From positions 1,178,001 through 1,242,000 of the forward strand of contig CM074804.1 of the NCBI GenBank assembly GCA_037447605.1: a stretch of DNA of 64,000 nucleotides, in the 5' to 3' direction. A program made the translations under genes and the position numbers. Shown here in pieces: positions 58,359 to 64,000 of this stretch. The notes under the pieces are model-generated. The model did no database searches. It saw only the letters and a list, made by a program, of their open reading frames with translations, and was not told the origin of the DNA. The stretch is from Zygnema circumcarinatum SAG 698-1b (Eukaryota; Plantae; Zygnematophyceae). Positions within the stretch are counted from its first letter, which is position 1. Each line of letters begins with the position of its first letter.

Positions 58359-60489
58359 CTACCCCTGGGCTTTTCCCCCACAGGCGAGACACTCCCGCTG
58401 CCCTCTGCCCCCGCACGCAGCGCAGCTCTTGGCTATGGCTGTCGGGCTCTTGATGGGCCCAAACGGATCGTCCACAAATTCACTCTTTAGGAAGCCGAGG
58501 GGCCCTCCGCCCTCCACTCCCCTCCCCCTGCAGGCTTTGCAGGGATGCCGCCCCGCGCCTCCGCAATCCAAGCATAACCCTAAATTTCTGTAGCAAGAAA
58601 GGGTGGAAATAAGGGACAAACGTAAGAAATCATAATGGTTGCAGCTTGTGATCAAGACGGAAGGCAAGTAGTTCTCCCTCGAAGCTTATATATGGGATAG
58701 GGAAGACACATAATGGAATGATTGAGCCTGTGTAGTTGATTGAGACATGCTTCTAAAGCAAGAATGCAGGGATGGATGAATGCTTCTGCAGAGAGCGAGA
58801 GAGGCTTCAGTGCTATTGTGGGAGAGGAAAGGGGACAAACGAGAGGGGGAGTGGGAGAGAGAGAGAGATGAGGGGAAGTGGAGGGGGGAGGCCGAGGGAG
58901 AGTGGGAAGGGAAGGAGAGGGCCGAAAGGAGACAGGGGGAAAGGAAAGCGGGAGGGAGAGTGGTAGAGGCGGGGGGGGAAGGGGAAAGGGAGAGTGGAAG
59001 AGGGGGAGGGAAAGGGGGTAGGGAGAGTGGGAGAGAGTGAAAGGGGGTGAGGAAGAGTGGCAAAGGTGGAGGGAAATGGGGGAAGGGACATCGGGAGGGG
59101 GGGAGGGAAAGGGAGGGAGGAAGAGTGCGAGACGGTAGTGAAAGGGGGTGAGGGAGAGTGGCAAGGGTGAGGCGGAGTGGGGGGAGGGAAAGTGGGAAAG
59201 TGGGAGGGAGAAGGGGAAAGAGGGGGAGGGAGAGTGGGAGATGGGGAGGGAAGGGGGGGTTGGGGAAGAGTGGGAATGGGGAAGGGCAAGGGGGAGACGG
59301 AGAGCGGTGGAGGGGAGGGAAAGGGGGGAGGGAGAGTGGGAGAGGGAATTCGAGTGAGTGTGAGGTTCAAGAAGCAGTGACCATGCAGAAGATGCAGAAA
59401 TACCCATATCGCTTGCATCACATCCCATCATAAGGAGCTTACTATTATTCTGTGAAAGTGAGATGACCTTGCATAATGCATCAGCTTCAGACTTCAGATT
59501 TGCGAAACATCCCTCTGTACACCAGATGAAGTAGGAAACCTCTATCACATCTTTGAAGTTCAGTTTTCACCATGGACCATTGCAACTACGTAAAACTGAT
59601 GACAACGATGAATTCATACGGCCGTCGTCATCAAGAAATCCTCGTCCCTCCCCCTCACCTCGCCTCTCTCTCACCCGTCCCTTCATCTCTCTCTCGCTCG
59701 CCCTCTCACTCCCTCGCGCTCGCTCGGCCTCTCTCTCTGGTATGCAGATGGAAAAGAAACGGCATGCCCACCAATGCAATCCATTTCCATTGAAGGAAAA
59801 ATGCTTGGCAAGCAAAAACATCGTACGACCTAAAACCAAAAAATAGCCCTCGCACGAATATGTTGAAATTATCCTAAGCAGCAAAGCGTGAACTGAAAGC
59901 TGAAATTTTTGCAATTGCAAAAGAAACCCCAAGATTGAGCTTGAAAAGAGCGCTAGAACAGACAAAAAAGTTGCACGATTGGATGAATGAGATGATGTGG
60001 TCTTCCGAAGGACTTCGAAAGACAGGCAACATTTATGCCCTTAAAAAAATTCACTCTGCAAGTTTTCTTCAGAACAATTTGTAAAGGAACGCAGATACAG
60101 CTCAGTACCCATCTCTTGTAATCAACACACAGCAGAAGCAAGTGAATGACTATTTGCAATTCTGTGCCCAAAAAGAACCGAACTCCAATCCTTGAAAAGA
60201 AACAACATTTCTACCATTGGTCTTGCTTTCTAATTGCTTCTCAAACAGGCAATAACTGCAGAAATTTTTCATATGCCGGAGCAGGAATCAGTGAAACTAC
60301 TTCACCCCGCATTTCTCTATTTTTTTTGTTTGTTTTTGCGTACCTTCTCTGAATCTTTGCCACGAGGGAATCAAACTTGGGAGCATTTGCTGCAGCCACA
60401 AGAATGGCGGCTCCAAAGACCATTCCTGCCGTCTCATTCGGAGTAAATGGGGCAAACCCTAAAGTCTCAGCGATGGAAATCGCCGGCAT
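58359..60489 (-). CDS. Small DnaJ-type cysteine-rich zinc-finger protein with N-terminal TM (At2g24395-like); 2 coding exons
   Basis: MPAISIAETLG..GMVFGAAILVAAANAPKFDSLVAKIQRR|NLGLCLDCGGAGRHPCKACRGRG..CAACGGRGQRECLACGG: four CxxCxGxG-like repeats. Intron ~60341-58593. Confidence 0.85.
58790..59350 (+). repeat. Intronic polypurine/G-rich tract
   Basis: ~560 bp G/A-rich run inside the DnaJ-like intron. Confidence 0.85.
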
Positions 60490-60830
60490 GGCTGAAAATA
60501 AGCTCAGACGATGAACAAATATATCGACGAGGGAATAGGAAAAGCTATATCTGAATGCAGGAAAATCCTTCCCTTGCTTGTTTGTCTGATTACCTAGAAT
60601 GGGTCCCGAGGATTCCTTGAATTTCTGCTGTGCCTGAAAAGGCAGGAACGCGTTTGCTGGTTTCAAGACGGTACGAGCTTATGACGGACGAACTCTGCTC
60701 GTCCGAGTGAAGACGTACGTATAACAGTACTTAACTAGCCAGTAGGTTCAGTTAGTAGTCAGTAGCTAATTAGGTTTATGAAGTAAAGAAAGCAAGCAGT
60801 CGTGTCGGCTATCTTAACATACTTCCGTCC

Positions 60831-62248
60831 ATGGCGGAAGGCTCATCAGACGGTGATGTATGCATGTCCATGTCGCCGAATGGCATATAGACTTGCATGA
60901 GGCATTCAACGTCCTCTATCTTCCTCCCTTTTCTTCCCTGTCACACACTCACACAGCTCAGCTCAGCTCAGCTCAGCTCTCACACCCTTGGTTCTGTAGC
61001 GGCTTTTTTGCTTGCTTGGTTTTGCAGTTAGGGTTGCCTGTTTCGCATAGTTCCTGCGAAACGGGGTTGAGGCTCAGGAAGACGTTGTGAAGACGCTGAT
61101 GCCTCCGTCTGAGCGCGTCATTGAAGCCACAGCATATTGTAGGTACATTACTTTTTAAGCTTTGGCCTTCCATAACCTCTCCTCTCTCCCTCCCTCTCTC
61201 TCTCTCCTCCCTCTCTCCCTCTCTCGCTTTTTCCTCCCTCCCTCCCTCCCTCTAAGGTGCCTGAACACGCAAAAATTGCAAAAATAAACTGTTGCTGCAA
61301 TTATTAGAAGTCTGCATACAAGCAGGATTCTTAATGCTCGTTTCACTCACTGTTCGCTTAACTGAAATGGTTTCAAATGCTATGCATATGCTGAGCAATC
61401 TATATTACAAGATTACACAAAACTTGTCTTCATAAGCCACAGCATACTGCACGTATGTGCTGCCCCGCCCCCCCCCCCCTCCCCCCTCCTCTCCTTCTCT
61501 TCGCAAGCTACTTGAACATGCTGAAGATCCCGAAATAGGCTGTCACTACGAGCCTTAAGAGTCTGCACATCCTGAACATTTTTCATGGCTCGAGTCCCCT
61601 GTTCCTTCTTCACGCCTGCGGCGGTGCAGCTGCGGGCACTGCTGCAAGTGGGAATGGGGCCTCAAGCTGCCCGGCCGCTTCTACATCGGCTTCGTTCCCT
61701 CACTCCTCCCCATACGCCTCCGTGCTCGCAAGAAGGCGGTCATCAGGACAAAAATTCCCCTTTTAGCCAAGTAAATTTCTTGCATTCTCACCCACATTTT
61801 CGCTCACTCATCATTCTCTCATTTTTTTTCTGTTAGCATCTTTAGCATGAGTGTAGCCACATGCTTAGACGTTTGCTTTCTTTTCCAAAATTTTGACAAA
61901 ACGTTTTTTGGGCGACTGTCAAGCCGTGTGAGCATGAACTGATCAAGAATGGCTAAATCAATTGTTTGTTCCATTTTGATTCGGATTTTCAAACCCTATA
62001 AACTCCACCGCATTCTCGATGGCATTATAGTTTCTGCATTGTCTGACTTTTCTATGCTTGATGGCAAGTACGAATTTTCCATCTCCTCCTAGCTCTATTT
62101 TATGTTTGGACACGCAACCAACTGACCAACAGCTCGTAGACATGGTCAGCATATGCTTGCCAAAGTCATGAGTGTTTGCACTGCCTGTGCAGCCAACTAC
62201 TTCCGTTAAAGTAAATAATTACTTTGGCAAGAGGCATTTCCTGGCATT

Positions 62249-62344
<96 letters not shown>

Positions 62345-63780
62345 TCTCTCGTCCCCCTTAACACCCCTTCCCGCCCTCTCCCTTCCTCTCTCGTGTGCTG
62401 ATTATTTTCTCGATGCAGGTACTGGACAGATACCAATTTGTTGGGCCAATCATATCACGGTCTCACTGCTAGGGGCACCTTCCCTAGCCAGGTAAGAGGT
62501 CGCATTCAAATCTATTCCTTACAATAACAGCTTGTAGCCCTCAGTTTGAAGTTCAGGGTTGCAGGAGCATCACCGTTAGGGCTTTGGAATGGAACTAAAC
62601 TTTCATGTGTGGTTCATTCAAGGAATTCCACCTGAGAGCGTCTGTCTATCAATTCCGCTATTTTATTAGAAGCCATTTTTGTTTCCGAACCATGTTTTGC
62701 TTGCCCCTTTCTTCCAATGCAATGTCCCATTCCCTCCTGCAGGCCCGGCCGGCCCTTCTTTCGCCTCTCAGCCTCCGTCACTGTGAACGGATTCCGGGCC
62801 GCCTTTTACTGTTTCCATGGCGGCTGTTGCCGCGCTACGGAACTATCGCAGCTGACACGCAGTTCTTCCCCTTCGGAACTCGCATGTTTGTTCCGGGCTA
62901 TGGCTGGGGAGTGGTGGGTGAACTCCTGTTTTTTTTTTTTTTTTTCTTCGATTGTTGGGGGGAGAGGGGGAGTGAGTATATTGGTGTTGGGAGTGCTCGT
63001 GGTTTGGAGGTGTATGATAGTTTTGGGAGTTTTAGGGCTACAGGCGTGGGGAGGAGCAAGGCGAGGGGAAGCGATGCCTTTGGTGATTTAGGGTTGTGGG
63101 CACCATGAAGTGGCATGTGCTTTTAACTGGGGTTTGTGGGTGGGCTGTGCCGTGCAAGGGCAGGTGGAGGACCGGGGTTCCGCCATAAAGGGGCCTGCTC
63201 GAATCGACTTGTTTCATCATTCTCATAATGAGGCAATGAAGTGGGGGAGAAGGCGACTCAAGGTGGGAAAGGGAACGGAAGGCGAAGAAGAGTACATGCT
63301 TTAGGTCTGAAGGATCTGATGGTTTTGAGATTTTTTTTAGAAAGTCAAGAGAAAGGTGGGAAGGTTTAAGAGGGAGGGAGGGAGGGATGGAGGGAGGGAG
63401 GGAGGGAGTGTGGCAATGGAGGGAGGGACAGATTTGGAAAATATATACTTTTTTGAAATAAAGGGATGAGCTTGTCTGATCATGTCATGTAGAGCGCGTG
63501 AAACAGGGAGGTGGATCCCAGGGAGGTGGATCCGAGGGGGCGGACATGATCAACCTTGGAGTTGCAAACAAGCCGATCATAGCCATCATTATCTTGTCTG
63601 ACGAAGGCTCTGCAGGGCAATGTCTCCATTCATAAGCTGAAACTAATCGATTCTATTTGATGCCACGTGTCAGGTCCTGGTTCTACGGCCCGGCGAGAGC
63701 GTGGTGGACCTTCTCAACCTTCCCCCGCCGGTCAAGTTCGTCCTGCGCGGCTTGGATTGGGCGAGGCGCTTTGTTTTCTG
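60831..63780 (+). CDS. 3D (Asp-Asp-Asp) domain protein of bacterial MltA/Sps type; ~7 exons
   Basis: MAEGSSDGD|FLRNG..IEATAYCS|[13 protein letters not shown]|[24 protein letters not shown]|..[27 protein letters not shown]|[33 protein letters not shown]|VLVLRPG..RRFVF*. All three signature Asp (AADT, VEDRG, IDL) are present. Confidence 0.85.
62250..62348 (+). repeat. (CT)n microsatellite in 3D-gene intron
   Basis: Near-perfect CT run. Confidence 0.95.
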
Positions 63781-64000
63781 AATGGAGCCATGGGAGGGAG
63801 AGAATGGCTTTTAGGGTTTCCATGTTGCTCCATGTTCCGTCATCCCGTGCCGTTTCCGTTTGTTGCACTCCGGTCCGTCTTGTTCTGTTCTGTTCCGTTC
63901 CGTTCCTTTCCTTAAAAGCTTACAGCTGCGCATTTCTATGCATTGCAAACAGGTGGCAAAGGTTCGACCAAAATTTGTTGATTCGCTTTTTTCTTAGTGG

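Follow-up and report, generated by a model that had tools for sequence, protein, structure and literature searches.

Within the 64,000-nucleotide window of the Zygnema circumcarinatum genome that we analysed, a gene for a bacterial-type 3D domain lies on the forward strand, its coding sequence running from 61099 to 63781 in six coding exons with five GT..AG introns and specifying a product of 211 amino acids. Four of the splice joints (61142/61630, 61770/62419, 62491/62743 and 63262/63674) appear with GT..AG borders in transcript-like contigs from four runs in three studies, and the fifth (62913/63164) is seen too, with exons 4 and 5 contiguous in contig records. The depth of these contigs is 75–195 across the exons versus 0–14 across the introns. 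With its reading frame intact and ordinary plant-type genes around it, this is a native, expressed nuclear gene with spliceosomal introns. The first-pass annotation had proposed about seven GT-AG exons; the splicing is borne out, but the transcript joints set the number of coding exons at six. A duplicated ATAYC boundary at 61434–61458 was considered as an alternative exon and rejected, as no joint uses it in any of the four runs; the depth that one run shows in this region falls on a poly-C tract, and the contigs leave room for rare isoforms at this position.

Exon 1 (61099–61142) supplies the start codon and residues 1–14, ends in ATAYC and contains Thr11 and Tyr13, the equivalents of T91 and Y93 in YuiC. 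Exon 2 (61630–61770; 141 nt, in frame, defined by its splice joints) encodes the sequence SCGHCCKW with a cysteine cluster of the form C-x-C-x-x-C-C, as well as the whole of a basic and hydrophobic insertion. The stretch that includes YWTDT comes from exon 3 (62419–62491), which has joints on both sides. Exon 4 (62743–62913) encodes a helical segment that the bacterial relatives also have and, with the motif GTIAADT and D124 (62854–62856), the first half of the 3D domain. The second half of the domain lies in exon 5 (63164–63262) with D146 (63170–63172), RIDL, D158 (63206–63208) and WGRR, and exon 6 (63674–63781) adds a C-terminal extension with an amphipathic helix at its end and then the TGA stop. 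The motifs quoted in the earlier annotation were all recovered on the plus strand and in the order given there.

The 5′ end of the gene differs from the one first predicted, which placed an initial exon at 60831–60857 (MAEGSSDGD) and an intron at 60858–61050. This arrangement has no transcript support: the joint 60857/61051 is not seen in the transcript-like contigs, which run unbroken from 60600 to 61140. An in-frame stop lies near 61048, and the next in-frame ATG is at 61099. All of the roughly 30 orthologues share this start position, beginning with M-[AP]-P about 10 residues upstream of TAYC. The unbroken contigs and the start of the orthologues at the 61099 ATG lead us to reject the proposed first exon. 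The ATG at 60831 instead opens a 19-codon reading frame on the plus strand (60831–60890), outside the coding sequence and in the transcribed 5′ region, which may be an upstream open reading frame if it is on the same mRNA as the 3D gene. On the minus strand, at about 58359–60666, ORF translations reveal a divergent neighbour that encodes CxxCxGxG repeats, as in a DnaJ-type zinc finger, together with a hydrophobic stretch, in agreement with the head-to-head DnaJ-like gene described previously. In the assembled contigs the transcripts of this neighbour and of the 3D gene are joined into one, and a contig with spliced 3D exons extends more than 800 nt beyond 60600.

The identification of a 3D domain with all three aspartates, made initially from the sequence alone, is supported by profile searches at a level far above chance. 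We searched the protein of the window exon by exon and used an orthologue that is 82% identical (P0001) as the whole-length proxy. Exon 5 alone scores 35.9 bits against the Pfam 3D family (PF06725; cut-off 23.8, E 8.5e-9), exon 4 alone matches YuiC in the PDB (E 2e-4), and the two exons cover directly consecutive parts of the profile, positions 2–28 and 34–64, respectively. P0001 reaches 57.5 bits against the same cut-off of 23.8 over profile positions 2–72, and this is its sole Pfam match. A profile built from the family matches YuiC with an E value of 4.7e-18. D124, D146 and D158 align with D129, D151 and D162 of YuiC and with D261, D297 and D308 of MltA, and D158 corresponds to the catalytic aspartate of both enzymes. 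These three positions (D123, D145 and D157 in P0001) are invariant in 89 family sequences, at least 90% of which also keep T11, Y13 and the four cysteines. His163 is another invariant residue. In YuiC, T91 and Y93 orient or assist the catalytic aspartate (PMC4499186). Two closer assignments were rejected: the family scores 63–69 bits against the SpsC/YuiC equivalog model NF058633 of NCBIfam, whose cut-off is 280, with a match to the C-terminal half of the barrel only, and MltA proper does not fit a protein of 211 residues that matches PF06725 only and lacks the MltA-specific second domain.

The predicted structure agrees with this assignment. An AlphaFold2 model of P0001 (pLDDT 93, pTM 0.85) superposes on YuiC with a Z score of 11.9 and an rmsd of 2.4 over 96 residues (34% identity), and on MltA with a Z score of 11.2 and an rmsd of 1.7 over 87 residues. 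Among proteins of known structure, YuiC and MltA are the best matches. Expansins score lower, at a Z of about 8, and expansins and kiwellins together fall at 7–8. In the structural alignment, residue 1 of the model corresponds to residue 81 of the YuiC chain, which places T11 on T91 and Y13 on Y93. As modelled, the algal protein is a double-psi beta-barrel of the MltA/YuiC type, with the first beta strand of the fold beginning at residue 4 and the C-terminal helix spanning residues 193–209.

Two further elements distinguish the green-lineage proteins. The basic insertion, about 27 residues long, takes the form of ordered beta strands in the model (pLDDT above 90), and both it and the C-terminal tail are common to chlorophytes and streptophytes and absent from all bacterial relatives examined. 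The insertion had been noticed before and described as unusual; its presence stands, but it is a conserved, ordered and green-lineage-specific feature. The C-terminal helix is amphipathic, with a hydrophobic moment of about 0.55. No segment of the protein is hydrophobic enough to span a membrane, the highest 19-residue hydropathy being 0.92 versus 2.25 for the lipobox signal peptide of the bacterial relatives, and we therefore rejected a tail-anchored or membrane-spanning protein, as the C terminus is amphipathic with charged residues. The protein as a whole carries 33 Lys and Arg against 13 Asp and Glu, which gives it a strongly basic surface.

Neither a transit-peptide-like extension nor a signal peptide was found in the roughly 30 green-lineage orthologues. 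A Ser/Pro/Ala-rich N-terminal extension occurs only in Colocasia and one further relative and may be an annotation artefact. The first-pass annotation had remarked that the predicted N terminus did not resemble a transit peptide; the lack of a leader holds, although for a different sequence, as the true start lies 10 residues before the domain. Because the protein begins so close to the domain, there is no room for a cleavable leader, and with a beta strand starting at residue 4, canonical plastid import or secretion of the algal 3D protein is unlikely; the case against such import is stronger than the first-pass annotation supposed.

The bacterial-type ancestry suggested for the gene is supported by phylogeny, in which the 32 eukaryotic sequences group as a single clade (SH-aLRT 98) placed among lipoproteins from Thermodesulfobacteriota, which are sulfate reducers. 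Branching inside the eukaryotic clade follows the species tree, and intron positions are common to the Zygnema gene and the Marchantia and Tasmannia chromosomes. The gene is present in one or a few copies and has evolved slowly, the algal and liverwort orthologues being about 60% identical. The Marchantia orthologue is Mp1g05360, and Physcomitrium has two loci. An ancestor of the green plants would have acquired the gene from a bacterium; the gene would then have lost its lipoprotein signal and gained spliceosomal introns, a basic beta-hairpin-like insertion and the C-terminal amphipathic helix, with vertical inheritance since and loss in nearly all flowering plants. Among the best matches surveyed, the closest bacterial sequences are not cyanobacterial, which suggests that the gene was not acquired with the plastid wall. 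The bacterial gene neighbourhood proved uninformative as a clue to function, being a housekeeping context with mutL and a trmFO-like gene; a class A PBP lies near the gene of a bacterial relative in one genome only.

The family ranges across prasinophytes (Chloropicon), Mesostigma, Chara, Zygnematophyceae, liverworts, mosses, lycophytes, a fern and the gymnosperm Cryptomeria. Tasmannia and Colocasia are the only angiosperms among the named matches, and there is no named match in Asparagus or Citrus, both of which are reported to have near-complete peptidoglycan toolkits; absence here refers to the best 120 matches of two word searches, the best 80 of 399 genome loci and Atlas clusters. The lineages that carry the family are those reported to retain the peptidoglycan toolkit (PMC10784329, PMC12681378, PMC13519894). 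Judged from named database hits, the family appears to track plastid peptidoglycan, its matches fitting the lineages reported to keep the Mur/PBP genes. We found no publication on plant 3D-domain proteins in the literature searched.

Taken together, these features are best read as those of a lytic-transglycosylase-type enzyme, a miniature MltA, that acts in the cleavage or turnover of plastid-wall glycan, a reading to which we assign a probability of about one-half. Such an enzyme would cut the MurNAc–GlcNAc glycan bond and leave a 1,6-anhydro-MurNAc end, as MltA and YuiC do. It would act on the thin layer of peptidoglycan that lies between the two membranes of the chloroplast envelope, or on fragments released from that layer, and cleavage would support plastid division or wall turnover beside the known moss hydrolases. 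A point against a plastid role is that the peptidoglycan layer is out of reach from the cytosol for a leaderless protein. Because there is no N-terminal leader, the protein would need a non-canonical route into the envelope, possibly by way of the insertion or the helix; alternatively, the enzyme would act on glycan fragments that reach the cytosol. There is a precedent in moss, where DipM1 was found at the chloroplast surface even though it has no predicted transit peptide (PMC4015805). The more specific proposal, that a leaderless transglycosylase from a sulfate-reducer-like bacterium, and not from the cyanobacterial ancestor, is made in the cytosol, imported without a transit peptide into the envelope intermembrane space through its insertion or helix and serves there as a missing glycan cutter, is tentative and in our estimate would sooner prove wrong than right. 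Of the domesticated muralytic enzyme envisaged earlier, the bacterial-type domain with intact aspartates is thus established, and the plastid role is a conjecture that fits the distribution.

Among the other explanations, the one that survives best, although we consider it unlikely, is cytosolic salvage, in which the leaderless protein would trim turnover products of the plastid wall, or bacterial fragments, in the cytosol together with other bacterial-type recycling enzymes encoded in the same genome and leave the intact wall uncut. The lack of any targeting signal is in keeping with this idea, as is the formation of an anhydro-disaccharide from a short oligosaccharide by YuiC (PMC4499186). 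However, polymeric strands are the usual substrate of lytic transglycosylases, there is no sign that fragments reach the cytosol, and the strongly basic surface and amphipathic helix suggest attachment to a surface.

Somewhat less probable again is a repurposed barrel, which would act on another glycan or serve as a non-catalytic binding or regulatory module, with the insertion and helix carrying the new function. About half of the 211 residues fall outside the approximately 96 that align with YuiC, related barrels such as the expansins and kiwellins play non-muralytic roles, and the best score of 69 bits is far below the SpsC equivalog cut-off. Against this, every catalytic-type residue known from MltA and YuiC has been kept, without exception or nearly so, over about a billion years of green plants and in the bacterial relatives, which would be surprising in a barrel that no longer catalyses.

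We regard as improbable an antibacterial or immune enzyme with no plastid link, one that would break down the walls of bacteria that invade or live with the host, or make or remove peptidoglycan fragments used in immune signalling. The muralytic fold and intact active-site residues are compatible with such a role, and horizontal transfer of bacterial wall enzymes into eukaryotes is on record, for example in aphids (PMC8689515). The antibacterial defence raised as an option in the first-pass annotation loses ground nevertheless, since a secreted form is unlikely for a protein with no signal peptide. Single or low copy number and slow evolution also speak against it, as defence genes usually expand and diverge, and its disappearance from almost every flowering plant would then be difficult to account for. 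An artefact, whether contamination from bacteria, a pseudogene or a relic that is not transcribed, can practically be dismissed: nothing was found in favour, and it is refuted by the five spliceosomal introns, the spliced transcripts, the intact frame, the intron positions shared with Marchantia and Tasmannia and the plant-type gene neighbours.

That mosses, streptophyte algae and gymnosperms have peptidoglycan around their chloroplasts is now accepted, but little is known of the enzymes that remodel it. A closed sacculus can grow and divide only if glycan strands are cut, and PBP and Mur mutants have giant or few chloroplasts. With its catalytic residues intact and a distribution that appears to follow the wall, the 3D family is a conserved candidate for a plastid-wall remodeller. 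If the plastid-wall reading is true, it would supply a glycan cutter, missing until now, for plastid division or the turnover of the wall. The leaderless protein would also be a useful probe of the routes by which proteins enter the envelope intermembrane space, and its apparently non-cyanobacterial origin is a further sign that the machinery of the plastid wall was drawn from several sources.

Of the systems with which this protein can be compared, the peptidoglycan hydrolases of moss and glaucophyte plastids are likewise encoded by bacterial-type nuclear genes in green lineages that keep the toolkit. The moss enzymes reportedly include hydrolases of the MltB and VanY types. DipM is a LytM-type protein whose fold and chemistry are unlike those of the 3D family. 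Knock-out phenotypes are on record for the known plastid hydrolases, whereas our searches found no experimental work on the 3D family.

YuiC/SpsC of Bacillus subtilis (PDB 4wjt, 4wlk, 4wli) is, like the algal protein, a single-domain, stripped-down version of MltA. The barrels superpose, and the TAY motif and the three aspartates, the catalytic one included, align. YuiC, however, is a secreted, domain-swapped dimer from a Gram-positive bacterium, whereas the algal protein has no signal peptide. Beyond what YuiC has, the algal protein possesses the four-cysteine cluster, the basic insertion, a C-terminal helix (about 29 residues) and a helical segment (about 55 residues) that is common to its deltaproteobacterial-type relatives. 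MltA itself (Escherichia coli, 2ae0 and 2pi8; Neisseria gonorrhoeae, 2g5d) has the same catalytic barrel (Z 9–11) and the same aspartate triad, and the nearest bacterial relatives of the algal protein are lipoproteins too. The algal protein differs in its length of about 210 residues, compared with about 350, in having no second domain and in the loss of the lipoprotein signal in the green lineage.

The closest resemblance is to the 3D lipoproteins of Thermodesulfobacteriota (Desulforhopalus, Desulfofustis and Desulfocapsa; P0017, L013, L050), whose genes are flanked by mutL on one side and a trmFO/gidA-like gene on the other. These proteins have a signal peptide with a lipobox and possess neither the insertion nor the C-terminal helix, and their genes have no introns. 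Nonetheless, they are 40–47% identical to the algal protein over the whole mature sequence, share with it the cysteine cluster, the helical segment and the 3D barrel, and are its nearest relatives in the tree.

Matched on its own to the Pfam 3D profile (PF06725), coding exon 5 of the plus-strand gene (63164-63262) scores 35.9 bits (E 8.5e-9; cut-off 23.8 bits) over profile positions 34-64, and coding exon 4 (62743-62913) aligns to the adjoining positions 2-28. Exon 4 alone also matches YuiC of Bacillus subtilis, a single-domain MltA-like protein, in the PDB (E 2e-4). The 3D-domain gene proposed in the first-pass annotation is therefore real, far beyond chance. Three-frame translation of 60780-63800 recovered every motif quoted there on the same strand, and joining the pieces at GT..AG sites results in an open frame.

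We placed contigs of four public runs, from the same organism and three studies, on 60600-63900; the runs are transcript-like, with a depth of 75-195 in exons versus 0-14 in introns. The contigs of the four runs carry GT..AG joints at 61142/61630, 61770/62419, 62491/62743 and 63262/63674, and the junction 62913/63164 is present in the same comparison. The first exon originally proposed, encoding MAEGSSDGD at 60831-60857, falls outside the coding sequence: 60600-61140 is unbroken in the contig bearing all the spliced exons, no 60857/61051 joint is seen in the contigs of the four runs, and some 30 orthologues all start M-[AP]-P about 10 residues ahead of TAYC, matching 61099, the next in-frame ATG after a stop at ~61048. 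From the joints, the stop and the orthologue starts, we assign six plus-strand coding exons (61099-61142, 61630-61770, 62419-62491, exons 4 and 5, and 63674-63781), which together encode 211 amino acids. If transcribed in the mRNA of this gene, the ATG at 60831 would open a 19-codon upstream ORF. About 300 nt into intron 1, at 61434-61458, lies a near-copy (~23/27 bases) of the last bases of coding exon 1 plus its donor (AAGCCACAGCATA.TG), followed by a good GTATGT donor; the four runs contain no splice joints at this near-copy. Long (CT)n and CCCT-type microsatellites in the introns and 5′ region (62242-62357, 61177-61258 and 60947-60986) were skipped as repeats in the read and contig comparison.

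The DnaJ-like gene described as divergent from the 3D gene is borne out by ORF translation, which gives a minus-strand gene at 58359-60666 with a DnaJ-type zinc finger (CxxCxGxG repeats) and a hydrophobic segment. Its product resembles small plastid zinc-finger assembly factors. Because the transcripts of both genes are merged in the assembled contigs, which cannot fix the transcription start, the two genes may overlap at their 5′ ends or be driven by one bidirectional promoter.

The searched collection lacks the window protein itself, and its closest member there is P0001, an 82%-identical orthologue. Whole-protein Pfam 3D scores for P0001 and for the family members from Marchantia (P0004) and Tasmannia (P0141) are 50-57 bits, above threshold. 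Assignment as an SpsC equivalog was rejected, since the match reaches 69 bits where the cut-off is 280. A profile built from 89 family members hits YuiC at E 4.7e-18, aligning the aspartates of the AAD, V-x-D and R-I/L-D motifs. The AlphaFold2 model of P0001 on the 89-member alignment is confident along its whole length (pLDDT 93, pTM 0.85) and superposes on YuiC with Z 11.9 and an rmsd of 2.4 over 96 aligned residues (34% identity), on Neisseria MltA with Z 11.2 and an rmsd of 1.7 over 87 (28% identity), on other MltA enzymes with Z 9-10 and on expansin-type barrels with Z about 8. In YuiC, T91 orients the catalytic carboxylate D162, the O6 proton may be taken up by Y93 and D151, and the reaction yields a 1,6-anhydro sugar (PMC4499186). 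The active-site equivalents in the window protein are T11, Y13, D124, D146 and D158; all three aspartates are present, as first claimed, and invariant among the 89 sequences, and T11, Y13 and four cysteines are conserved in at least 90%. The MltA/YuiC catalytic set is intact and has been kept both by the bacteria and throughout the green lineage, which argues that the protein would function as a lytic transglycosylase.

Identity to the closest prokaryotic relatives is 40-47%. Among the protein matches listed and the best 80 of 399 genome loci, these relatives belong overwhelmingly to the Thermodesulfobacteriota (Desulfocapsaceae, Desulfobulbaceae, Desulfobacterales and Desulfohalobiaceae); no cyanobacteria occur among these best matches, the genome scan covering close relatives. 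A maximum-likelihood tree of 119 rows groups all 32 eukaryotic rows in a single clade (SH-aLRT 98) that lies within Thermodesulfobacteriota-type bacteria. Branching inside this clade approximates the species tree, starting with chlorophytes together with Mesostigma, followed by zygnematophytes, next by Chara, bryophytes and lycophytes, and finally by seed plants; its apparent sister, a Sumerlaeota genome on a long branch, is unsafely placed. In the window gene, introns follow residues ~14, 61, 86, 143 and 176, and these positions are shared with Marchantia and Tasmannia. On the simplest reading, an early ancestor of green plants would have acquired the gene from a bacterium in one ancient transfer and passed it on vertically, and most angiosperms would later have lost it. 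Because the genome scan retained close relatives only, a cyanobacterial donor at a greater distance is still formally conceivable. In Desulfofustis (L013, 1114-6815) and Desulforhopalus (L050, 1269-8116), mutL and a trmFO/gidA-like gene flank the 3D lipoprotein gene; in the former, the opposite strand carries a class A penicillin-binding protein gene immediately upstream of mutL.

Whereas the bacterial relatives start with a signal peptide and lipobox cysteine, the green-lineage proteins lack a signal. They carry a ~27-residue basic and hydrophobic insertion, encoded wholly by the 141-nt coding exon 2, and a C-terminal extension of ~29 residues, both kept from chlorophytes to seed plants; the insertion noted in the first-pass annotation is thus present but not peculiar to one gene. 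In the high-confidence P0001 model the insertion forms beta strands and the tail a helix (residues 193-209), and the last 18 residues compute as a strongly amphipathic helix. The protein is strongly basic (33 Lys+Arg versus 13 Asp+Glu), and a hydropathy scan of it found no segment of transmembrane grade (maximum 0.92). Skipping exon 2 would keep the frame; no such joint is seen in the contigs of the four runs. The insertion exon is skipped in frame in P0007, a EukProt transcript of another alga, and the Cys-cluster/insertion exon is skipped or shortened in P0007 and the Cryptomeria isoforms P0029 and P0145.

Word searches of protein collections place the family in streptophyte algae (Closterium, Spirogloea, Mesotaenium, Chara, Mesostigma), bryophytes (Marchantia, Calypogeia, Riccia, Sphagnum, Physcomitrium, Ceratodon), lycophytes and ferns (Selaginella, Diphasiastrum, Adiantum), the chlorophytes Myrmecia bisecta and Chloropicon laureae, and seed plants, with Cryptomeria and, as the only named angiosperms among the matches listed, Tasmannia and Colocasia. 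Two monocot-type members, P0144 of Colocasia esculenta and P0143, have a ~68-residue N-terminal extension rich in Ser, Pro and Ala that looks like a transit peptide, and lack ~32 residues of the helical segment and the C-terminal helix; these oddities are either true divergence or faulty gene models.

To our knowledge, the plastid wall is the sole peptidoglycan-type polymer these organisms make. Its biosynthetic toolkit is reported from Chloropicon, streptophyte algae, bryophytes, lycophytes, ferns and gymnosperms, with a patchy occurrence among angiosperms (PMC10784329, PMC12681378, PMC13519894). The named database matches follow the same lineages, and the case for a plastid-wall role draws chiefly on this co-distribution. 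Topology speaks most strongly against such a role, since the wall sits between the envelope membranes and the protein is leaderless. Balancing the two, we put the chance that the substrate would be plastid peptidoglycan or its fragments at about one in two. Moss DipM1, found at the chloroplast surface without a predicted transit peptide (PMC4015805), offers a partial precedent for a leaderless protein at the chloroplast. Rival readings are salvage in the cytosol, a barrel repurposed for another role, and defence against bacteria.

Public databases already list predicted proteins of the family, named automatically after the domain, including an ESM Atlas cluster of 82 members, mostly Streptophyta, called '3D domain-containing protein'; we found no paper describing or testing the plant 3D-domain family. 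C14, C16, C19, C20 and H164 of the window protein (P0001 residues 14-20 and 163) are kept in bacterial and plant proteins, where the four cysteines and the histidine may form a structural metal site. YuiC, in contrast, lacks both the clustered cysteines and the invariant histidine, and the second domain of membrane-bound lytic murein transglycosylase A (MltA) is absent from the family in the Pfam scan of P0001, P0004 and P0141. The fold and chemistry are already known from these systems; what is new is a eukaryotic variant that lacks a leader and has an insertion and a C-terminal helix of its own.
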